Shown: one piece after another, positions 1,933-60,105 of the stretch
How the letters are laid out: each line of letters starts with the position of its first letter
Numbering within the stretch: the first letter of the stretch is position 1
From: Blastocladiella emersonii ATCC 22665
Taxonomy: Eukaryota > Fungi > Blastocladiomycota
Assembly (NCBI GenBank): GCA_025594325.1
Contig: JANHCV010000003.1
Location: forward strand, 744,001-808,000
Length of the DNA: 64,000 nucleotides
Reading direction: 5' to 3'
Program-made: the position numbers and the translations under genes
The notes under the pieces: model-generated
What the model was told of the DNA's origin: nothing
The model's input: only the letters and a program-made list of their open reading frames with translations
Databases searched by the model: none

Positions 1933-2789
1933 AGTGTGTGTGTGTGTGCGTGTGTATGTGTGCGTATTCGAGACGCCGAGGTGATCAGAGAGCCGCGCCA
2001 TGAGAGTGAGAGTTTGTAGCGGTAGTCCGGCGGGTGCAATTCAGCGAGTCGCTGCGCGGTGGGAGACTCAAGTCGATGCGGTCTGGCAAAACAGGCCAGT
2101 CGTCCGAGGCAAAAAGATTGTCTCCAGTTCAAAAACACGTGGCGGAAGCGACGCACGCGTGCGAGACATCTCTGCCCAACGGATACGTGTTTCATATTCT
2201 TGCGTGGTCCCGAATTAACGCGGGGAACCTTGGCGTCCTGAGCTCTAGAAGAGAGCATTTCATGTTCCCCCACGTATCAAGCCGGACCAGCGGCGGGGAG
2301 ACGGGACGGGAGACGCGCTGCGCCACACACGTGTTCCATCAGGTTCTGGCTCGCTCCTCACGGCCCGGCGCCACGCAGCGCTCATACAGCCGCGTGCCGG
2401 TACCATGAACGAAGGCGACGCTATGTGCGCATGAAGTCGAACGGGAGCTCGCTGGCCCAACAGCGCGCTCAAGCGAGCTCGATTGAAGCAACGCGAACAC
2501 AAACGCGACTGAGGGCCAAGGACTAGCGTAAGACAGTTCCCTCGGTGCAACCGCCCGTTCAGCCCGGTCCTTCGCCGATCGTGAGCCCGTGTACCGTCTG
2601 CTCAGTTTCGGCGGTTCACGGCTTACGTCGAGGGACTCGCCGCTCAGGTTGCGGCGGACGACTGCAGGGTGCAGCGGCCACCTCGGATCACATCCCGTCC
2701 GCCACCAGAACACCATATGCTACATGGGTTTCCTTCGCGCGTGTAAAGACCGAGTGGAGAAAGGCACACGAGCCAGGCGCTCCTGCAGT

Positions 2790-5401
2790 CAGAGGGCGGC
2801 ATCGAAGTGGGAGACGGCAAGCCCTACTAGGCTCGTGACCGCGGGTCAACGTGGCGCGTGAAAGCGACGCGTCGGCGGCGCCGCCTGCGCGGCCACTTCA
2901 CCACTCCTCTCCTCGCAGCCGGCAACGTGCGGACCACGGTCGCCTCGATGAAACTCTCACTTTATGAATAATACACGACCTCTTGCGATACATGATACAC
3001 TACTCCTTGTACGGCCCGTAGTGGTGAATGGATCGGAGCTGCGCCGACACGATGATCCCATCCTTGGCGAGGTCGAGCTCGGCCTGTGGGCCGACGCTCT
3101 TCGGCTTGTTCTTGCACTGGCGCTTACTGCCGTGCTCCTCCCGCTGGCGCCCCGCGTCGATACCGAGCTCCATTGGCTCGACGCTGGCCATGCGCTTCGC
3201 CGTTGAGCTCTTGGCGCCGGGCCCGTTGGGCCGCATCGCCATGGTGGCGCGCCGTATGATCTCGTTGAGGGACCGCTCCGCCACGAAGAAGTTGGGCCGG
3301 ATCGGCGCACCGTCCTTTGTCTTGACCGGACCCCGCCATGTCGGCCGGTCCTCGTCGTATCCCGCGACGGACAGCTCGTGCACGTTGTCCTCGTCGTCGG
3401 ATCCCTCTTCTCCTCCGCGCGCGCGTACCGCCGGTCCGGACACTGCAGGGCCAGTCGCGGCCGAGGATGCCGCTGCCGCTACCGCCGTGGACGCCGCGTG
3501 CGCTTTTGCGCGCTTGGCTTCGCGCCGGTTCGTGTAGCTCGCGCGGCGACTCTGCCCGGTCGTCATGAAGCCGAGCTCCTCGATCGTCAGCAGGTTCTGG
3601 CGCTCGAGCTCGTCGTACTTGGCCATCATCCGCACAATCTCGGTGGCCATGCTCAGCTTGAGCCCGCGGCCGTCGCGGTTGCCGATGGCCTTGATTAGCG
3701 AGAAAAAGCACTCGACGATGTTGGTGCTGAATGCGCGCAGGATGGCCCAGAGCGGCTTGTTCTCGTCGACCTCGTCGTGGGCTAGCTTGACGAGGAACTC
3801 GACGGCGAGGACGAGCATCATCAGGGCGATGCCCGTCTCGAAGTTGAGCCCGTTGGACAGGTCGTTGCGCCGTTTATTGTACGCGACGGAGAACATGCGC
3901 TCGGCCAGCGACTTGAAGAGCCACTCGCGCACGGGCACGAGGAGCTCGCGCATCTGCTTGAGCGCGAGGTCTGGATCGTCGTGGACGTCGTACAGCGACG
4001 TGATCGCCGTGGCCGCACGCTCGTACTCGCCGACTGCCGCGGGGCCGACCAGGGCCGCGTACTCGTGGAGCGCGGCGATGACGTCGGGATCGAGCATACG
4101 CATCGCCTCCCGCTCGTTCTGCTTGTCGCGCTTCTCCCAGCGCACGTGGAAGGGCCCGCCCGGGTTCGCGATCCCGAGACGGCGGAGCGGACTCGATTCG
4201 ACGTCGAGCTGTGCGAGCACGCTCGGATCGGCCGTACGCCGCGCCTCGGCCGAGATCACGGGCACGGGCGCCTGCGCGCGCTTCGTCGTCTTCTTGTCGC
4301 TGCACTTGGACTCGTGCACCTGCGTCACGGAGCGCTTGAGGGCGGGGGAATAGTCCACGATCGGAATGAAGTCGCGCGCGTTGGGACCGCTCGAGTGCCC
4401 CCAGTAGCCGCCCTTCCAGGTCTCGGCTCCGTTGCGCGCGACAATGTCCATGATGCCGTCGGCGAGCAGCTCAATCAGGGACTCGCGCACGGGGACCAGG
4501 GCCTTGAGCGTCGCGGGGACGCCGTTCTCCATCTTGGTTTTTCCATTGCCCGGCACCTTGAGGGCGGCAAGCGCTTGAGCGAGCACGCGCTTCTTGACCA
4601 TGGCGCAGTCGGTCAGCGGCTGCTGCAGGTACCCGCCGGCTCGAAGCGCTTCTTCGATGGCGGCCTCGGACTCGAAGGTGCGCTTGCCGAACTCGGCGGC
4701 CGGGTCGATCGCGTTGGCGGGGACAGAAACTACGGCGGGGACTGTCGCGCAGGGTGCAGGGTCCGGGTTCAGGCGCCCACCTTCAGCGAGCGGGTGCAGC
4801 ATCGCTAGCTTCGCCGACGCGAGGTTGGGCCCAGCCAGCACCATGCAGCGCATGATCTCCCAGGAAAGGTCGACCGTTGCGCAGGGAGTGGTCGGTTCCA
4901 TGACGCCGAGCGCATTCGGCCCGTCCGTGATCGCGGTGATGATGGCCGCCGTGCCCTTGGGCAGCGTGACGTTGCTCGGCAAGACGCGCAGCGGGGGCTC
5001 GCCCTTTATCAGGCTCTCTCACCACCCCACCGCTTCAGCTCACGCTCTTTCGTCGCCACACGTCGAGACTCCCTCAAGATGCACCTGATCTGGTTGCTCG
5101 AAAGACTCGGGACGGCGTAGTGCAAGCAGCAGGGGGGTTTATATGATGTACAGGATACTCCGTCACAACACGCGGATCGCCGCCGCTACTTGACCACCAC
5201 GCCGGAACCAGCCGCCACCACGCCTCGTCATGGATTCGGCAGCGAGGAGAAGGGAATGCAGGCGGCAGCGGCGGGAGTGGCGCGTCGCGGCGGCTCGCGG
5301 TGAGCGGTGAGCGCGCCGACGCGTCGCTTTCACGCGCCACGTTGACCCGCGGTCACGAGCCTAGTGGGGCTTGCCGTCTCCCACTTCGATGCCGCCCTCT
5401 G
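2790..5401 (-). mobile_element. TIR DNA transposon copy 1 (2612 bp; 88-bp TIRs; 9-bp TSD TCCTGCAGT), P-element-like
   Basis: TIRs beginning CAGAGGGCGGCATCGAAGTGGGAG at 2790..2877 and 5314..5401 (one mismatch at 5366). TCCTGCAGT flanks both ends (2781..2789 and 5402..5410). Same length as, and near-identical to, 52036..54647. Confidence 0.95.
3000..4982 (-). CDS. Putative DDE transposase, P-element-like (copy 1; no ATG, 5' end uncertain)
   Basis: Inside the TIR element. Motifs AITDG, IVDYSPALK (DxxH-position), EKRDKQNEREAMRMLDPDVIAAL and FSTNIVECFFSLIK parallel P-superfamily transposase motifs. Confidence 0.7.
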   Translation of the reverse strand: MPSNVTLPKGTAAIITAITDGPNALGVMEPTTPCATVDLSWEIMRCMVLAGPNLASAKLAMLHPLAEGGRLNPDPAPCATVPAVVSVPANAIDPAAEFGKRTFESEAAIEEALRAGGYLQQPLTDCAMVKKRVLAQALAALKVPGNGKTKMENGVPATLKALVPVRESLIELLADGIMDIVARNGAETWKGGYWGHSSGPNARDFIPIVDYSPALKRSVTQVHESKCSDKKTTKRAQAPVPVISAEARRTADPSVLAQLDVESSPLRRLGIANPGGPFHVRWEKRDKQNEREAMRMLDPDVIAALHEYAALVGPAAVGEYERAATAITSLYDVHDDPDLALKQMRELLVPVREWLFKSLAERMFSVAYNKRRNDLSNGLNFETGIALMMLVLAVEFLVKLAHDEVDENKPLWAILRAFSTNIVECFFSLIKAIGNRDGRGLKLSMATEIVRMMAKYDELERQNLLTIEELGFMTTGQSRRASYTNRREAKRAKAHAASTAVAAAASSAATGPAVSGPAVRARGGEEGSDDEDNVHELSVAGYDEDRPTWRGPVKTKDGAPIRPNFFVAERSLNEIIRRATMAMRPNGPGAKSSTAKRMASVEPMELGIDAGRQREEHGSKRQCKNKPKSVGPQAELDLAKDGIIVSAQLRSIHHYGPYKE

Positions 5402-48733: not shown

Positions 48734-49110
48734 TCATGAGTGTAAGTCGGCAATGAACACCTTTTCAGTTGCACACACTTTTCTGATTCCGGCTCGCATC
48801 CTCGGGAAGAATGCTCGCGAGATAGACGCGTTACCCGCGTCCAAGTTGACCACGTTGCGCAGCGCGTGCACCTCCTGGCGCATCAGCGAGCGCTTGCCGA
48901 CCTTGAACTCACCCACGGGCGTAAGCACGCTGACGTGCAGGTTGCGCGTGATCGCGAGGTCGATGAAGCGTCGTTGTAGGCAGACAGCATCGTCGTCGCC
49001 TCGTTAGGTCGATAATCAACGCCGCAGCCGTTCATCTTCATGATCCCGCAGAGCGCACAGTGCACGGGCGACGCCAACGGCAACGCGCGCAACGTCCGCG
49101 TTGTTGTCGG
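48734..49110 (-). pseudogene. Frameshifted gene remnant of unknown family
   Basis: GC3-biased stretch RRFIDLAITRNLHVSVLTPVGEFKVGKRSLMRQEVHALRNVVNLDAG follows a frame change from the 48883..49128 ORF; no family recognised. Confidence 0.3.
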
Positions 49111-49114
49111 CAGC

Positions 49115-49884
49115 CAGCGTCGCCTCATTATATTGAGGAACAGCGCCGCCTTGTTGAATAGATGATCAGCGTCGCCTTGTCGCGTTGATGATCATCGTCG
49201 CCTTGTCGCGTTGATGATCATCGTCGCCTTGTCGCGTTGATGATCATCGTCGCCTTGTTGAGTTGAAGTTCAGCGCCGCCTTGTTGAGTTGGTGATCAGC
49301 GTCGCCTCGTTGCGTCGATGATCAGGTTTGCCTTGTTGGGTTGATAACCAGCGTCGCCTTGTTGCGTAGATGACCAGCGTCGCCTCGTTGCATCCATGAC
49401 CAGCGTTGCCTTGTTGTGCTGGCGAGCAGCGTCGCCTTGCTGCGTTGATGTCCAGCGTCGCCTCGTTCCGTGAATGTCTAGCGTCGCCTCGTTACGTCAA
49501 TGTTCAGCGCCATCTCGTTACTTCAATGTTCAGCGTCGCCTCCTTGCGTTGATGACCAGCGTTGCCTCGTTAACTTGCGGATCAGCGTTACCTCGTTGCG
49601 TTGATAGTCAGCGTCGCCTCCTTACGTCAATGTTCAGCGTCGCCTCGTTACGTCAATGTTCAGCGTCGCCTCGTTGGGTCGTGATCAGCGTCGCCTTGTT
49701 CCATCGATGACCAGCGTCGGCTCGTTGCATCGATGACCGGCGTCGGCTCGTTGCATTGATGACGAGCGTCGGCTTGTTGGATCGATGACCAGCGTCGCCT
49801 CATTAAGTTGAAGTTCAGCGTCGCCTCGTTGCGTCAATGACCAGCGTCGCCTCTTGCGTTGATCATCAGCGTCGCCTTGCCGCG
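49115..49884. repeat. Tandem array of ~30 units of 26 bp, consensus CAGCGTCGCCTYGTTGCGTTGATGAY
   Basis: Units start at 49115, 49141, 49167 ... 49661, 49686 ... 49842, 49867. Two units are 25 bp. The first ~15 nt are conserved and the last ~11 variable. Confidence 0.95.
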
Positions 49885-50489
49885 CAGCACTAATTGGAGC
49901 CAAGATGAGGATTGAGTGCTGCGCTTGAGAGTCGACAAACAAACGAGTTGATTTAGCTCAGACTACGCTGAAGTCGTCATAGCGAAAGTATTGCGTTCCT
50001 GTCGAGTTTCTGCCCCAGCATATGGTTGCTCATCTCCATCGCGACACGATCAAGGCAAGGAGCAGGGGCTGCGACTCAACCCAGCCGCGCTGCTGCTGCT
50101 GTTGCCGCATAACATGCTGCGCAGAGCGACAGTGACAAGGTAACACGTAAGGTGAACCACCGCCTTGGCTCAGCTGCAAAATTAACTTTGTAAGGAAGCT
50201 AAATGAGGTACAGTCGCCAACTTGGCGCGGATTCGGCTGAAGTCGCACATCAACCAAGAAACGTCATTGACACATGAAGTAGCAACAACAGAGTACATAT
50301 TTGTTGCGGGTTAACCTTGATTCAGCGAGGGCGCGCAAGGGAGAAAGGGCGAGGGGACGCGTTCAGCCACCCACGTGGCATGTATCAGCCCGATGAGGCA
50401 AGCCCAAATGTGACAAGTAACGCCAGACCCGGTGGCGGAGCAGGTGGAGGTACGGTTGCAGATGCGGTAGGCGGAGGCGCAGAACCAGA

Positions 50490-52035: not shown

Positions 52036-54647
52036 CAGAGGGCGGCATCGAAGTGGGAGACGGCAAGCCCTACTAGGCTCGTGACCGCGGGTCAACGTGG
52101 CGCGTGAAAGCGACGCGTCGGCGCGCTCACCGCTCACCGCGAGCCGCCGCGACGCGCCACTCCCGCCGCTGCCGCCTGCATTCCCTTCTCCTCGCTGCCG
52201 AATCCATGACGAGGCGTGGTGGCGGCTGGTTCCGGCGTGGTGGTCAAGTAGCGGCGGCGATCCGCGTGTTGTGACGGAGTATCCTGTACATCATATAAAC
52301 CCCCCTGCTGCTTGCACTACGCCGTCCCGAGTCTTTCGAGCAACCAGATCAGGTGCATCTTGAGGGAGTCTCGACGTGTGGCGACGAAAGAGCGTGAGCT
52401 GAAGCGGTGGGGTGGTGAGAGAGCCTGATAAAGGGCGAGCCCCCGCTGCGCGTCTTGCCGAGCAACGTCACGCTGCCCAAGGGCACGGCGGCCATCATCA
52501 CCGCGATCACGGACGGGCCGAATGCGCTCGGCGTCATGGAACCGACCACTCCCTGCGCAACGGTCGACCTTTCCTGGGAGATCATGCGCTGCATGGTGCT
52601 GGCTGGGCCCAACCTCGCGTCGGCGAAGCTAGCGATGCTGCACCCGCTCGCTGAAGGTGGGCGCCTGAACCCGGACCCTGCACCCTGCGCGACAGTCCCC
52701 GCCGTAGTTTCTGTCCCCGCCAACGCGATCGACCCGGCCGCCGAGTTCGGCAAGCGCACCTTCGAGTCCGAGGCCGCCATCGAAGAAGCGCTTCGAGCCG
52801 GCGGGTACCTGCAGCAGCCGCTGACCGACTGCGCCATGGTCAAGAAGCGCGTGCTCGCTCAAGCGCTTGCCGCCCTCAAGGTGCCGGGCAATGGAAAAAC
52901 CAAGATGGAGAACGGCGTCCCCGCGACGCTCAAGGCCCTGGTCCCCGTGCGCGAGTCCCTGATTGAGCTGCTCGCCGACGGCATCATGGACATTGTCGCG
53001 CGCAACGGAGCCGAGACCTGGAAGGGCGGCTACTGGGGGCACTCGAGCGGTCCCAACGCGCGCGACTTCATTCCGATCGTGGACTATTCCCCCGCCCTCA
53101 AGCGCTCCGTGACGCAGGTGCACGAGTCCAAGTGCAGCGACAAGAAGACGACGAAGCGCGCGCAGGCGCCCGTGCCCGTGATCTCGGCCGAGGCGCGGCG
53201 TACGGCCGATCCGAGCGTGCTCGCACAGCTCGACGTCGAATCGAGTCCGCTCCGCCGTCTCGGGATCGCGAACCCGGGCGGGCCCTTCCACGTGCGCTGG
53301 GAGAAGCGCGACAAGCAGAACGAGCGGGAGGCGATGCGTATGCTCGATCCCGACGTCATCGCCGCGCTCCACGAGTACGCGGCCCTGGTCGGCCCCGCGG
53401 CAGTCGGCGAGTACGAGCGTGCGGCCACGGCGATCACGTCGCTGTACGACGTCCACGACGATCCAGACCTCGCGCTCAAGCAGATGCGCGAGCTCCTCGT
53501 GCCCGTGCGCGAGTGGCTCTTCAAGTCGCTGGCCGAGCGCATGTTCTCCGTCGCGTACAATAAACGGCGCAACGACCTGTCCAACGGGCTCAACTTCGAG
53601 ACGGGCATCGCCCTGATGATGCTCGTCCTCGCCGTCGAGTTCCTCGTCAAGCTAGCCCACGACGAGGTCGACGAGAACAAGCCGCTCTGGGCCATCCTGC
53701 GCGCATTCAGCACCAACATCGTCGAGTGCTTTTTCTCGCTAATCAAGGCCATCGGCAACCGCGACGGCCGCGGGCTCAAGCTGAGCATGGCCACCGAGAT
53801 TGTGCGGATGATGGCCAAGTACGACGAGCTCGAGCGCCAGAACCTGCTGACGATCGAGGAGCTCGGCTTCATGACGACCGGGCAGAGTCGCCGCGCGAGC
53901 TACACGAACCGGCGCGAAGCCAAGCGCGCAAAAGCGCACGCGGCGTCCACGGCGGTAGCGGCAGCGGCATCCTCGGCCGCGACTGGCCCTGCAGTGTCCG
54001 GACCGGCGGTACGCGCGCGCGGAGGAGAAGAGGGATCCGACGACGAGGACAACGTGCACGAGCTGTCCGTCGCGGGATACGACGAGGACCGGCCGACATG
54101 GCGGGGTCCGGTCAAGACAAAGGACGGTGCGCCGATCCGGCCCAACTTCTTCGTGGCGGAGCGGTCCCTCAACGAGATCATACGGCGCGCCACCATGGCG
54201 ATGCGGCCCAACGGGCCCGGCGCCAAGAGCTCAACGGCGAAGCGCATGGCCAGCGTCGAGCCAATGGAGCTCGGTATCGACGCGGGGCGCCAGCGGGAGG
54301 AGCACGGCAGTAAGCGCCAGTGCAAGAACAAGCCGAAGAGCGTCGGCCCACAGGCCGAGCTCGACCTCGCCAAGGATGGGATCATCGTGTCGGCGCAGCT
54401 CCGATCCATTCACCACTACGGGCCGTACAAGGAGTAGTGTATCATGTATCGCAAGAGGTCGTGTATTATTCATAAAGTGAGAGTTTCATCGAGGCGACCG
54501 TGGTCCGCACGTTGCCGGCTGCGAGGAGAGGAGTGGTGAAGTGGCCGCGCAGGCGGCGCCGCCGACGCGTCGCTTTCACGCGCCACGTTGACCCGCGGTC
54601 ACGAGCCTAGTAGGGCTTGCCGTCTCCCACTTCGATGCCGCCCTCTG
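52036..54647 (+). mobile_element. TIR DNA transposon copy 2 (2612 bp; 88-bp TIRs; 9-bp TSD GCTCGCGCC), P-element-like
   Basis: TIRs at 52036..52123 and 54560..54647. GCTCGCGCC at 52027..52035 and 54648..54656. Inverted relative to copy 1. Confidence 0.95.
52455..54437 (+). CDS. Putative DDE transposase, P-element-like (copy 2)
   Basis: The 660-aa translation is identical to 3000..4982. Confidence 0.7.
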   Translation: MPSNVTLPKGTAAIITAITDGPNALGVMEPTTPCATVDLSWEIMRCMVLAGPNLASAKLAMLHPLAEGGRLNPDPAPCATVPAVVSVPANAIDPAAEFGKRTFESEAAIEEALRAGGYLQQPLTDCAMVKKRVLAQALAALKVPGNGKTKMENGVPATLKALVPVRESLIELLADGIMDIVARNGAETWKGGYWGHSSGPNARDFIPIVDYSPALKRSVTQVHESKCSDKKTTKRAQAPVPVISAEARRTADPSVLAQLDVESSPLRRLGIANPGGPFHVRWEKRDKQNEREAMRMLDPDVIAALHEYAALVGPAAVGEYERAATAITSLYDVHDDPDLALKQMRELLVPVREWLFKSLAERMFSVAYNKRRNDLSNGLNFETGIALMMLVLAVEFLVKLAHDEVDENKPLWAILRAFSTNIVECFFSLIKAIGNRDGRGLKLSMATEIVRMMAKYDELERQNLLTIEELGFMTTGQSRRASYTNRREAKRAKAHAASTAVAAAASSAATGPAVSGPAVRARGGEEGSDDEDNVHELSVAGYDEDRPTWRGPVKTKDGAPIRPNFFVAERSLNEIIRRATMAMRPNGPGAKSSTAKRMASVEPMELGIDAGRQREEHGSKRQCKNKPKSVGPQAELDLAKDGIIVSAQLRSIHHYGPYKE

Positions 54648-54671
54648 GCTCGCGCCGCTCTCCGAGTCACT

Positions 54672-54778
54672 GCAGTCTGGCGAGGTCCCGGCTTCGAGTC
54701 CCGCCGACGGCACTTTGTTTTCCGACGTGGTGCAAGCCCGAAATGCAGGTTCTCGGTTCGAATCCTCTCGCTCGCACA
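54672..54778 (+). other. Degenerate tRNA-like remnants (two B-box/T-arm motifs)
   Basis: GGTCCCGGCTTCGAGTCCCGCCGACGGCA followed by a T-rich run, then TCCGACGTGGTGCAA...GGTTCGAATCC. No complete cloverleaf could be folded. Confidence 0.35.
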
Positions 54779-54933
54779 CAACTCCAACGCCTTTGTGACC
54801 ACAAATCAGTTGTATCGATCGACTTTCAGACAAAGGAGGGAGGGAGATGACGAGAGGAGGTAGAAGCGCAGCGGATCCGAGACCTGCTCCGACCCGCGCG
54901 CACGGTCGCGAGACGACGACGACGCAGCGACGC

Positions 54934-56277
54934 TTAGGCCGAGTAGTCGTAGCCGTTGCCGCGGCCGTCCTCCTGCTGCTCCTCGGCCTCGGGCTGGCGG
55001 CGCTTCGGGTGCTTGGACGCGGCCGCGGCGCGACGGCCACCACGGCGGCCACCGCGGGCGCGGAGGCGGCCGAAGAGACCGCCGATCCCACCGCGGGCGC
55101 CCTTCTTGGCGCGGGCGCGGAGCGAGGCGAGCGCCTTGCCGCCCTTGCGACCCTTGCGGCCGCGGCCGAAGCGCTTGGACAGGCCCGACAGCTTGCCGCC
55201 CTTGCGGCCCTTGCGGCCCTTGCGGCCCTTGCCGGCGCGGCGGGCGCCGAAGCGGAGGCCCTTGGACTTCTTGGCCTTGGCGGCGCCGCAGCCGCACCCG
55301 GCGAGCTTGCCGACGGCGCGGAGCTTGCTCACGATGACGCGGTCGGGGTGGCCCTCGGCGACCGAGCGCGCGAGCGACAGGATCGTGCGGCGGGCGCCGA
55401 TGCCGCGCTTGCCGATGCCGCGCGAGTTGAGGCCCTTGCGGCCGCCCTTGCGACCCTTGCGGCCGGCACGGCGGCCAGCGCGGCGGCCACGGCGCGGGGC
55501 GCGCTCCTCGGCGTCCTCGTCGCCACCGCGGGCGCCGCGGAGGCTGAAGCGGCGGCCCTTGCGCCCGCGGCGCGCGAGACCCTTGCGGCCCCCACGGCGG
55601 CCCTTGCGACCACCGCGGTGGAGGCGGCTGAACAGGCTCGACAGGCGGCCGCCCTTGCGACCCTTGCGACCAGCACGCGCGCGGCGGGCGAGAGCGCGAC
55701 CGCGACCGCGGCCCTTGCGGCCCTTGCGGCCGGCGGGACGGCCGAAGCGCGCCGACATGCCGCCCGAGCCGCCAGCGCCGCCCTGCTGCAGCATCACGTG
55801 CTTCTCGTCGTGGTCCTCCTCGTGCGACGAGCGCTTGAGGCGGTGGCGGACTAGACGCGCGTCGCGAGGAAGAGGGGGCGAGGGTCAGCGCGCGTGGGAA
55901 TCGCGGGTCGCGCGAGGTCGAAATGATACGCACGCGACTTGACGCCGGCGCGCAGGCCGCCGCGGTTCTTGGTCTTGCCGACGCGGAGCGAGAAGGCTAC
56001 GTGGGCGAGAAAGGTCAGATCTCGGCACCGAGGGAGACCGAACCGCGAGAACGTACTCTCCGAGTTGATGTCGAGACCAGCGGCGAGCGGCAGCTGCTTG
56101 CCCGAGCCGCGCGACACCTCACGGCCAGCTACACGGGCGGGGTGGGGACCGTGAGAACCGAGGTCGCGACGCGTGCGCGAGAAAGCGCGTACAGTCGGCC
56201 GTGGCGACCAGCGAGTTGGCCAGCAGGGTGACGGAGCACGCGACCAGGAGCGTGGCCTGGAAGACGGTGGGCTTCAT
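54934..56277 (-). CDS. Secreted highly basic Gly/Arg/Lys-repeat protein (378 aa; exons 56277..56193, 56128..56057, 55996..55934, 55850..54934)
   Basis: Signal peptide MKPTVFQATLLVACSVTLLANSLVATA. Three canonical introns (64, 60, 83 nt), all phase 1, total 1137 nt. Repeated GRKGRKG blocks. Confidence 0.85.
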
Positions 56278-57181: not shown

Positions 57182-60105
57182 ATGCTGGACCACCTCTACG
57201 GGAAGCCGTCGACCACCTGGAAGCGCTTCGAGGCGCTCCTGGTCGCGCTCGTCTCGTACGCTCGCCTCGTCGCTGCACGCCCGAGTGCCTCTTGCGCTGA
57301 CCACCTCCATCCAGGCTCAAGATCCTCAAGGCCTACCACAACCGCCCCGCGCCCGGCGGCCGCTTCGTCCGCGGCCTCGACGCCAAGCTCAAGCGCTTCG
57401 CGCCGTGGCAGATTGTCCTCGGCACCCTCACGTCCGGCTACCTGCTCTCCAAGTTCAGTCTCTTCACCTTCATGAACTGTACGCTTCCTGCTGTACCGGT
57501 TTCGGCCAGCCTGATCTGACTCTGCGACGCGACCGCGTGTAGCCACGGAACCCTATGCTCGCTACGTACGATGGTCACCGACAGACCGCTCGCTAGTCGC
57601 GCTCACACGACACCCGCTCTGTAGTACAATCGCAACTTCTACCGCGCGACGTGGATCATGGTCGCGCTCGACGCCGGCTTCTGGACCGCCATGAACATCA
57701 AGCCCAAGATCCTGCGCGACGTGTGCAGCATCCTGTTCACGCTCTTCTACCTCGTCTTCGCCAACCGCGCCGACTACAAGGTGCGCCGCCTGCGCGCCTC
57801 GCCGACCCTCGACATGATGCGGCTGTCGTGGGAGAAGCAGCGGCACCCGCTGTTCCGCCTCGCGTCGCGCGCCATGCAACCCAAAATCACCTGGCGCGGG
57901 AAGCGCGTCGAGCTGCCACGGCCGCCGACCGCGTACGGGTACAACCCGGCGGATCCCAACACGACGCGCACGGTGCTGTCGCTCTTCTTCGCGGGCGCCG
58001 TGGCCGACCTCGCGCACGTCCGCAACGTGATCCTGCACTTCCCCGGCGGCGGGTTTGTGTGCATGGACCCGTCGATCCACGAGGACTACCTCGTCGAGTG
58101 GGCGCACCTGGCGCCGCACACGCTCGTCGTCGCCGTCGACTACGCCAAGGCCCCCGAGTACCCGTACCCGTACGCGCACGAGGAGCTGTTCGAGCTGTAC
58201 AAGCTGATCCGCGAGACCAACGGCGAGTGTCTCGGGCTTGCCGGGTGGACCGCCGATTTCGCCGTCACCACCGTCACCAACGGCCGCGCCGCCCACACCA
58301 CGGAGCGCCGCCGGTGCGCGCCCATCGTGATCGCCATGTCCGGCGACTCGGCCGGCGGCAACCTCGCGGCCGGCGTCGTGACCCGGTGCATCGAGGCCAA
58401 GGTCCCGCTCCCCGACTCGCTCGTGCTCATCTACCCGCACCTCGACATCGACATGGCGTGTTGGCTCTCGCCGCAGACCACGGAGCTGCTCCGCGTCGAG
58501 TCGGCCAAGCACGTCAACGCCCACGTCGACATTCACCGCACCGCGAGCGTCGGCCACCTCAGCCAGCTGCACCTCAGCGCCCTTGCGACCACGACGGCCG
58601 CGGCCGCGGCGGCCGCCGTCTCGGCGCCGACCAGCCCGCGCGGGCTCGGCCCCGCGGGCACGTCGTCGGGTGTCCTCGACCACTCGGCGCCCATGTCGTC
58701 GCTCTCCATCAACACCAATATGGACGCGTCGGGCTCGTCGTCGTCGGGCGGCGGCCTGCAGCGCAAGCGCAGCTTCTTCGAGATGGCCTCGTCCAAGCTG
58801 TCGGCGCTGCGCACGCAGAAGCCGCACACCGTGTTCGACGACTACGGCAACCCGACTTCGGCGCACCCGCCGTCGTCGGCCATCGACGCCACGCCGACGG
58901 GCACCGGTACCGCGACGCCGCCGCCGCCCAAGTCGCCGTACCGCGGTCCCTCGGCCACGTACCCGCTGCCTCCGTCGACGGGCGGTCCCGCGGCGCTCGC
59001 GCGGCACGGCGGGGCGACGGCGGGCTCGACGCTGGCACTGACGTCGCACATGGCCAACTTCAACGACCGGGTGCTGACGCCCGAGACGATGCGGGCGCTG
59101 GCGCTCCTGTACCTCGGCCCGTCGCCGATCCCGATCGACCTCGAGCGCGACTACTACCTGTCGCCCGTCCGCACCCCCGACGCGATCCTCGCGCAGTTCC
59201 CCAAGACGTACCTCGTGTGCGGCGAAAAGGACCCGCTCGTCGACGACACCATCACCATGGCGGGCCGGATCCGCGAGGCCAAGCAGCGCGCGTGGCACCG
59301 GAGTCTCGGGCGGCCCCGGCCCCGCGACACGGATGTTGCGGAGGTCGTGATCCTCGAGGGCGTCTCCCACGCGGTGCTCCAGATGATGGCGTTCCTCCCC
59401 GAGGCCAAGGACACGTGCCGCCTGATCCACGGGTGGTTCAACGAGACGTTCCACCCGGCCGGCGAGCCCGCGGTCGCTAAGATGGCGGCCGCGGCCGCGC
59501 AGCAGCAGGCGCGGTCGACCACGAGCGCTACCATGGGCTCGCGCACCACGTCGCGGTCCAAGTTCACGATCGGCGCCGACCACGAGGGCCTGCACAGCCT
59601 CGTCGGCAGCAATGGGTCGGCCGGCTCGTCCTTCGCCGCCGACGACGCGTCGCCGCAGCCCACGGTCGTCCACCGCACGCAGCAGCCGCGCAGCCGGTCC
59701 GCGTCGCCCGTGCGCCCGTCGTCGTCGTCATCCAACACGCCGACGCCGCGCACGGCTACCGCCACCTCGGCGTCGCAGCGGCCCAAGCTCGGGTCGGCAC
59801 ACGTCGACGAGGAGGTGAGCCTGCTGACGGGCAGCGAGGCGGACGATGATGACGATGACGACGACTACCTCGAGTTCCGCGACCAGGCGCACGTCGACCA
59901 GGCGCGGCTCCTGCAGCGGCGCACCATGCACCTGAGCCACGGGCTTTTCGGGTCCCAGGAGCAGGCGGATAAGGCGTTCCGGCAGAAGATTGGGACGGGT
60001 ACGCCGACCAAGCGCGCGGCGTCGACGACGGGGACGCCGAGCGGGAAGGCGGTGGCGCCGGTCGTCACGGTGCGCACGGCGAGTCCCGCGCGCAAGGCGG
60101 AGTGA
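57182..60105 (+). CDS. Hormone-sensitive-lipase-like alpha/beta hydrolase (fungal type; 3 introns near 5' end)
   Basis: HFPGGGF, VDYAKAPEYPYP, GDSAGGNL, CGEKDPLVDD, GVSHA; N-terminal membrane segment FYRATWIMVALDAGFWTAM. Confidence 0.9.

Follow-up and report, generated by a model that had tools for sequence, protein, structure and literature searches.

Does a stretch of DNA that stays open in four of its six reading frames encode a protein, and if it does, what kind of protein is it? The question is raised by positions 54934–56277 of a 64,000-nucleotide window from the fungus Blastocladiella emersonii ATCC 22665 (assembly GCA_025594325.1, contig JANHCV010000003.1, positions 744,001–808,000), which was analyzed here at its full length. 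A sequence-only reading had placed at this locus a spliced minus-strand gene for a secreted polycation with GRKGRKG repeats and dibasic processing sites, and had proposed as its product a precursor of antimicrobial peptides or an adhesive, cyst-coat, or polyphosphate- or DNA-condensing protein of an undescribed type. The best explanation reached in the present analysis is that the locus is a genuine orphan gene, apparently missed by the annotation, and that its product is a disordered polycation that would enter the secretory pathway, be trimmed once after the sequence RHRLKR, and bind polyanions by multivalent charge, an account that is held with about as much doubt as confidence. The gene structure and coding frame, the composition and repeats of the product, and its lack of relatives are described first, followed by its possible processing and function.

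A Four-Exon Reading Frame on the Minus Strand

The reading frame begins with an ATG at 56277, ends with a TAA stop at 54936–54934, and is divided among four exons of 85, 72, 63, and 917 nt; the spliced frame of 1137 nt comprises 378 codons and the stop. These coordinates agree exactly with those proposed earlier. All exons and introns lie on the minus strand. Exon 1 (56193–56277), which is preceded by a cacc-ATG context, encodes 28 residues plus 1 nt and is signal-peptide-like, whereas exon 2 (56057–56128) encodes part of the N-terminal region past the signal peptide and exon 3 (55934–55996) a basic stretch within that region. The remainder, 304 full codons and the TAA, is contained in exon 4 (54934–55850). 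The ATG at 56277 is the first downstream of a TATA-like box, and the signal-peptide-like segment lies three introns upstream of the main open reading frame (ORF), as the sequence-only reading had it.

The exons are separated by three phase 1 introns: intron 1 (56129–56192; 64 nt; GTACGC ... CTCAC ... TAG), intron 2 (55997–56056; 60 nt; GTACGT ... CTGAC ... TAG), and intron 3 (55851–55933; 83 nt; GTGCGT ... CTGAC ... TAG). The annotated intron of the neighboring gene H9P43_003117 (GTACGC...CTGAC...CAG, ~58 nt), the only annotated intron recovered from that gene, has the same 5′ hexamer as intron 1, and the branch box CTGAC is common to both genes. On its own, the composite intron motif is barely enriched, with 20 matches in 128 kb of sequence, both strands counted, compared to 14 ± 4 in shuffled sequence, and the weight lies instead in the clustering of three such elements and in their agreement with the frame. 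Chance would not be expected to place three such elements in succession within 342 nt of the same strand, each restoring the frame. Moreover, the phase with high GC content at third codon positions (GC3) changes at introns 1 and 3 in just the way that the proposed junctions demand. Intron 2 is a multiple of three without an in-frame stop, so that its retention would keep the frame as well; third-position GC within it, counted from the printed sequence, is ~0.65, compared to 0.83–0.95 in the adjoining exons.

Codon Use Distinguishes the Coding Frame from Shadow ORFs

In the interval 54806–55942, open stretches of 287–375 codons occur in four of the six reading frames, and ORF length is therefore no evidence of coding. 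The region is a shadow-ORF trap of a kind typical of repeat-rich DNA at 71% GC, a feature that probably accounts for the absence of the gene from the annotation. Synonymous codon use was scored with a table derived from the neighboring lipase, the sorting nexin, and two other ORFs with Pfam support. The proposed frame reached 0.87 bits per codon, compared to 0.38 for an Ala/Leu-rich ORF on the plus strand and −0.10 to 0.27 for the remaining frames. The plus-strand ORF had been raised by the sequence-only reading as the one that might be transcribed instead. Its third codon position coincides with the first position of the target frame, where GC is 0.77 as opposed to 0.915 at the third position of exon 4, and on codon score and third-position GC it was rejected as a shadow ORF. 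Exon 4 uses CGC for 62 of its 69 Arg codons and AAG for all 32 of its Lys codons; a bona fide neighboring gene has a GC3 of 0.95.

The exons were also analyzed one by one, the exon 4 product serving as the query for the searches and folding described below. In the predicted phase, exon 1 has a GC3 of 0.96 and a codon score of 0.96, and exon 2 values of 0.83 and 0.67, with negative scores in the other phases of both exons; the corresponding values for exon 3 are 0.95 and 1.21. Within exon 4, GC3 in the predicted phase is 0.92 in the segment before the repeats, 0.83 in residues 100–128 (the second acidic spacer and its flanks), and 0.97 in the tail, and it rises to 0.98 in the 65 central residues 141–205, which give the cleanest coding signal. 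Exons 1–3 and every non-repeat segment of exon 4 score positively in the predicted phase, and the alternative phases score lower and are mostly negative. Third-position variation among the GRKG copies was not used as evidence because the copies are picked by their amino acids, which makes the argument circular. The locus is probably a real protein-coding gene.

An Orphan Gene Apparently Absent from Public Annotation

The exon 4 product matched no Pfam family at E ≤ 1, and neither a self match nor a relative was found in a word-indexed search of a 5.8-billion-protein collection or in an exhaustive phmmer search of 1.84 billion representatives. Residues 141–205 alone had no relatives in the 5.8-billion-protein collection. 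Among PDB sequences, only chance matches to gyrase were obtained (E ~1), the ESM Atlas gave no match, and a six-frame search of the B. emersonii genome at E ≤ 10 revealed no paralogue of exon 4. A homologue search had been suggested by the sequence-only reading as a check, and its outcome, together with the charge of the exon 4 product given below, bears out the description of a strong polycation, here one without described relatives. A literature search for the string GRKGRKG found no paper; an exact look-up of ten ORFs of the window in the protein collection gave no match and is uninformative.

Against its own DNA, the exon 4 query scores 565 bits, and composition filtering therefore cannot explain the blank protein searches. 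The databases include the proteomes of B. emersonii, B. britannica, Allomyces, Catenaria, Paraphysoderma, and Coelomomyces; since the proteome of the species itself is present and no self match was returned, the gene is apparently absent from public annotation in this frame. The B. emersonii genome was annotated with funannotate and contains 10,031 genes (PMC9730499). The four open frames, together with the position of the signal peptide three introns upstream, are the apparent reason for the omission of the gene. As judged from these searches, it is apparently single-copy, orphan, and unannotated.

A Gly/Arg-Rich Polycation with GRKG Repeats

The 304 residues encoded by exon 4 are rich in Gly (23%), Arg (22.7%), Ala (11.5%), and Lys (10.5%), and their 101 basic residues (69 Arg and 32 Lys) stand against 18 acidic ones, resulting in a net charge of +83. 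The sequence contains 15 GRKG units and seven overlapping heptads of the form G[RK][RK]G[RK][RK]G. A degenerate DNA pattern for GRKGRKG has six matches in the gene and one elsewhere in the 32.6-Mb genome; a reversed-pattern control has one. The GRKGRKG repeat is far beyond chance, and its DNA pattern is essentially unique to this gene in the genome. The sole other match, on contig 8 (197832–197851, plus strand), uses the rare codons GGA, AAA, and CGG and is probably due to chance.

All of the features listed in the sequence-only reading were found in the product, from the hydrophobic N terminus, which ends in ATA before D, to the acidic tail. Past the signal peptide, an N-terminal region of ~50 residues, encoded by exons 2 and 3 and the start of exon 4, ends in RHRLKR. 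The RLKR within it (55831–55842) marks the border to an acidic, His-containing patch, SSHEEDHDEKH (55798–55830; 11 residues, net charge −4). From this patch to the C-terminal tail, ~270 residues are dominated by Gly, Arg, Lys, and Ala. Cationic block 1 (55528–55749; 74 residues, +33) contains GRKGRKG units and the segment RLSSLFSRL, and is separated by a second acidic spacer, GGDEDAEER (55501–55527; nine residues, −4), from cationic block 2a (55387–55500; 38 residues, +17). The central segment that follows (55237–55386; 50 residues, +10) is less repetitive and more hydrophobic; it contains the only two Cys residues, in the sequence CGCG, and most of the stretch with a GC3 of 0.98 falls within it. 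Cationic block 2b (54997–55236; 80 residues, +32) carries the segments KLSGLSKRF, ALASLRAR, and IGGLFGRL, and includes, at 55192–55232, a 9-bp unit repeated in tandem 4.6 times. The acidic C-terminal tail (54937–54996; 20 residues, −5), which contains the Tyr residues of its ending GNGYDYSA, has neither the hydrophobic end of a glycosylphosphatidylinositol signal nor a KDEL-type ending.

When the exon 4 product was modeled with AlphaFold2 in single-sequence mode, low-confidence helices and coil were obtained, with a predicted local distance difference test (pLDDT) score of 54 and a predicted template modeling (pTM) score of 0.19. This result is compatible with intrinsic disorder, and the model was too poor for a fold search.

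Predicted Secretory Entry and a Single Convertase Consensus Site

The product of exon 1 consists of Met-Lys-Pro, a hydrophobic stretch of ~20 residues, and Ala-Thr-Ala before Asp. In a rule-based check, residues 4–25 had a mean Kyte-Doolittle hydropathy of 1.71, both the −3 and −1 residues were Ala, and the N-terminal region in front of the hydrophobic stretch contained one Lys; the N-terminal flank of this stretch is at least as positive as its C-terminal flank. These properties suggest a signal-peptide-like segment, which would be cleaved between Ala and Asp.

The sequence RHRLKR, with which the N-terminal region ends, matches the furin/kexin consensus R-X-K/R-R, and RLKR is the only site that does so. 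Kexin/furin-type P-domains (P_proprotein, PF01483) are encoded at four loci in the B. emersonii genome, with scores of 63–96 bits. Cleavage by a convertase after RHRLKR is predicted from this consensus, and it would expose Ser-Ser-His, which has the X-X-His form of the amino-terminal Cu- and Ni-binding (ATCUN) motif.

Dibasic Pairs Reflect Composition

The sequence-only reading had given the protein dibasic processing sites; the idea that repeated sites of this kind are a designed feature is not sustained by the pair counts. KR and RR pairs together occur 16 times, compared to 22.7 ± 3.4 expected from composition in shuffled sequences (P = 0.035 for depletion). The pair in excess is RK, with 15 occurrences compared to 7.3 in shuffles (P = 0.001). 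RK places Lys at P1, which is disfavored by kexins. The many dibasic pairs simply reflect a sequence that is one-third basic, and the protein does not look designed for repeated cleavage.

In-silico cutting after KR and RR produced three related pieces of 29, 21, and 22 residues and many fragments of 1–9 residues. Each of the three pieces starts with (AR)AG[RK](G)RKGRKG, followed by a short segment with periodic hydrophobic residues; one more unit of the same kind, 23 residues long, appears only when cutting after KK is added. The four units, which have irregular ends, cover ~95 of the 378 residues, or ~25% of the protein. KEX2-processed repeat proteins (KEPs) of fungi, of which alpha-factor and Ustilago Rep1 are examples (Le Marquer et al. 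2019, PMC6339444), are defined by a signal peptide, at least three motifs interspaced by KR, RR, or KK, and repeats that make up at least 15% of the length (PMC6339444). The protein passes this filter on repeat content (~25% versus 15%), and the filter itself is permissive (PMC6339444).

The amphipathic character attributed to the short segments between the linkers holds in part. RLSSLFSRL, KLSGLSKRF, ALASLRAR, and IGGLFGRL all show hydrophobic spacing at i, i+3/4, and i+7 and are the top-ranked windows. However, the hydrophobic moment (muH) of the best 11-residue windows is 0.55–0.67, and five windows exceed 0.6, compared to 1.1 ± 1.8 in shuffles (P = 0.057), so that the amphipathicity is modest and marginal relative to shuffled sequence.

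Two further readings of the repeats were dropped. A precursor of amidated peptides, in which Gly would be followed by a basic pair, would call for peptidylglycine alpha-hydroxylating monooxygenase (PHM), for which neither PF01082 nor PF03712 had a match in the B. emersonii genome, in a profile search that works exon by exon and that gave no match in control genomes either. A collagen-like reading of (GRK)n was abandoned on the finding that the longest Gly-X-Y run is four triplets.

A Model for the Polycation and Its Alternatives

In the model favored here, the 378-codon product would enter the secretory pathway by a cleavable N-terminal signal peptide, and a kexin/furin-type convertase may trim it once, after RHRLKR. 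The trimmed product would be an intrinsically disordered and extremely cationic protein of Gly/Arg/Lys/Ala repeats. Its GRKG repeats, spaced by the weakly amphipathic segments, would bind polyanions and condense or cross-link them through electrostatic, multivalent interactions. Candidate targets are acidic polymers of the wall or coat, membranes, polyphosphate, and nucleic acid, which could be encountered outside the cell or in a secretory vesicle, and the three small acidic patches may serve as internal counter-charges. Nothing in the analysis separates an antimicrobial precursor from an adhesive, a cyst-coat component, or a polyphosphate- or DNA-condensing protein, and all of these are to be regarded as candidate functions.

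Several points weigh against this model. The hydrophobic stretch of ~20 residues in exon 1 is long enough that it may act as a signal anchor instead of a cleaved signal peptide. The 9-bp repeat (GGC CGC AAG) yields a three-base periodicity even if it is non-coding; the repeat blocks therefore add nothing, and the case for coding rests on the non-repeat parts. Mismatches between the DNA copies of the repeat are spread evenly over the three codon positions (0.25, 0.21, and 0.23), and the repeats are without a signature of purifying selection. Finally, a gene without homologues offers no evolutionary test of constraint.

Some of these observations also belong to the view that the locus is non-functional, whether as an ORF that arose very recently or is decaying or as GC-rich repeat DNA that mimics coding, and that no stable protein is made from it. 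The four open frames, the failure to find homologues or paralogues in the searches, a frame that funannotate apparently did not call, the lack of an excess of third-position differences among the repeats, and an apparently recent mobile-element copy, 100% identical to its partner and ending 284 bp past the stop codon, would all be in keeping with that view. It is nonetheless judged unlikely in the light of the strong, frame-specific codon bias, resembling that of real genes, of the non-repeat segments and of three separate small exons, to which are added three well-formed introns, a good start context, an intact frame of 378 codons, and a 905-bp divergent intergenic region that is compatible with a shared promoter region. 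The coding signature of the small exons bears also on a reading in which the protein would act inside the cell as a binder of nucleic acid or ribosomes, in a compartment such as the nucleus or nucleolus, with exon 1 not used as a signal peptide or with translation starting in exon 4. Low-complexity regions rich in Gly, Arg, and Lys, RGG triplets, and clusters resembling nuclear localization signals (NLSs) are typical of nuclear and nucleolar proteins. The product has such regions together with six RGG triplets and NLS-like basic clusters, and translation from a Met in frame at 55794 would yield a protein of 286 residues without a signal peptide. However, exons 1–3 carry a coding signature as strong as that of exon 4, in the predicted phases, and are most probably part of the protein; the ATG at 56277 comes first after the TATA-like box; and no RNA recognition motif (RRM), AT-hook (no RGRP and a single GRP), or other nuclear domain was detected, with no Pfam family at E ≤ 1. 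An intracellular role is rated as distinctly unlikely.

A secreted protein could also be cut repeatedly, with a Golgi kexin cleaving after KR and RR and releasing membrane-active cationic peptides of ~20–29 residues from a KEP-like or antimicrobial precursor. Precursors of cationic peptides typically contain acidic spacers and end in an acidic tail, and the product has both. Such processing would further agree with the related 29-, 21-, and 22-residue pieces, with the 23-residue unit released by a KK cut, which the KEP pipeline counts, and with the kexin genes in the genome; the published definition of KEPs is permissive (PMC6339444). On the other side stand the depletion of KR and RR and the enrichment of RK, the irregular unit ends, and the many useless fragments of 1–9 residues that complete cutting would leave. 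The hydrophobic moments are modest and marginal against shuffles, 18 acidic residues are far too few to neutralize 101 basic ones, and the neighbors are housekeeping genes with no tailoring enzymes nearby. Release of multiple peptides is considered improbable, and the polycation trimmed a single time after RHRLKR is preferred.

Genomic Neighborhood

The target gene and H9P43_003117 (57183–60102, plus strand) are divergently oriented, their start codons being 905 bp apart. H9P43_003117 of B. emersonii ATCC 22665, which the adjacent plus-strand ORF matches with 100% identity, has one intron and encodes a protein of 913 residues of the Abhydrolase_3 or hormone-sensitive-lipase-like type; the next-best matches of that ORF are from Allomyces, B. 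britannica, Catenaria, Paraphysoderma, and Coelomomyces. With orthologues throughout the Blastocladiomycota, H9P43_003117 represents a useful synteny anchor. The neighbors of the target are housekeeping genes, encoding the lipase, an RRM protein, Rrp40, and a PX sorting nexin, and neither tailoring enzymes nor a biosynthetic cluster were found among them.

The window also contains a 2615-nt inverted repeat, the arms of which (2787–5401 and 52036–54650) are 100% complementary and lie 46.6 kb apart, a structure compatible with a mobile element present in two copies of very recent origin. Of these, the right one, which ends 284 bp downstream of the target stop codon, contains a 660-codon ORF (52455–54437, plus strand) that has no Pfam match. 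A tandem array at 49036–49888 is made of ~30 copies of 26-bp units that are 60–82% identical to reference stretches. In the 3′ flank of the target, positions 54672–54778 include sequence resembling a tRNA T-arm (GGTTCGAATCC-like, plus strand); over the whole window, ARAGORN found no tRNA and Rfam no family, and the T-arm-like sequences are therefore relics at most.

Significance and Comparison with Known Systems

If expressed, the gene would be an addition to the B. emersonii catalogue of 10,031 genes, and an early-diverging, zoospore-forming fungus would gain a secreted polycation without a counterpart in described families. The protein would be a candidate for roles in encystment adhesion, in the assembly of the wall or coat, or in host-free antimicrobial defense. 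More generally, low-complexity secreted proteins in GC-rich genomes can be rescued from among shadow ORFs by tracking the GC3 phase across candidate introns. For now, the locus remains an orphan low-complexity gene with an uncertain role, and its product can be set beside several groups of known proteins.

With KEPs, the product shares a signal-peptide-like start, a repeat region with KR and RR pairs, the presence of kexin in the genome, and approximately four units of 21–29 residues that follow a dibasic pair. In contrast to KEPs, it has no sequence similarity to any member of that group, its dibasic sites are slightly depleted for a composition that is 33% basic, its units are irregular, and in its main repeat, GRKG, the two basic residues stand as RK, an order that suits kexin poorly. 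The precursors of linear cationic antimicrobial peptides, such as the mussel myticalins, combine a signal peptide, one or more cationic peptides, anionic pro-pieces, and dibasic cleavage (PMC5577615). The product resembles them in its signal-peptide-like start, in cationic stretches flanked by acidic patches, and in an acidic C-terminal extension, and a cut after RLKR could expose an X-X-His N terminus as in His-rich cationic peptides of the histatin type. It differs from them in that its cationic part is ~250 residues long with a net charge above +80, rather than one or a few short peptides, that the acidic parts do not balance this charge, that amphipathicity is weak, and that homology is lacking. 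With nuclear RGG- or Gly/Arg-rich proteins and with protamine- or H1-like proteins, it has in common a Gly/Arg/Lys/Ala composition, extreme positive charge, and predicted disorder; it is set apart from them by a signal-peptide-like exon and by having neither an RNA- or DNA-binding domain nor the core of an AT-hook.

The remaining group consists of secreted polycations of matrices and adhesives, among them the silaffins of diatoms and the Gly-rich cement proteins of the sandcastle worm and of ticks, which phase-separate (e.g., PMC11794139). Compared to silaffins and cements, the product is dominated by Arg (69 Arg versus 32 Lys) and contains little Ser (6%), Tyr (two residues), or Pro; the regular RXL-bounded units of silaffins were not seen in it, nor was sequence similarity to them. 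To our knowledge, no biomineral or cement has been described in B. emersonii. On the other hand, the product is like these proteins in being of a secreted type, disordered, Gly-rich, strongly basic, and repeated, with 12 K-x-x-K spacings, and given its multivalent charge it could plausibly form complex coacervates with polyanions. At its boldest, and with only a slim chance of being correct, this comparison would make the product a polycation, either secreted or stored in vesicles, of a type so far undescribed in fungi, which phase-separates with a polyanion such as polyphosphate, an acidic polymer of the wall, or nucleic acid to form the adhesive or coat of the encysting, wall-less zoospore or the dense matrix of a zoospore vesicle, an independently invented functional analogue of diatom silaffins and invertebrate cement proteins.

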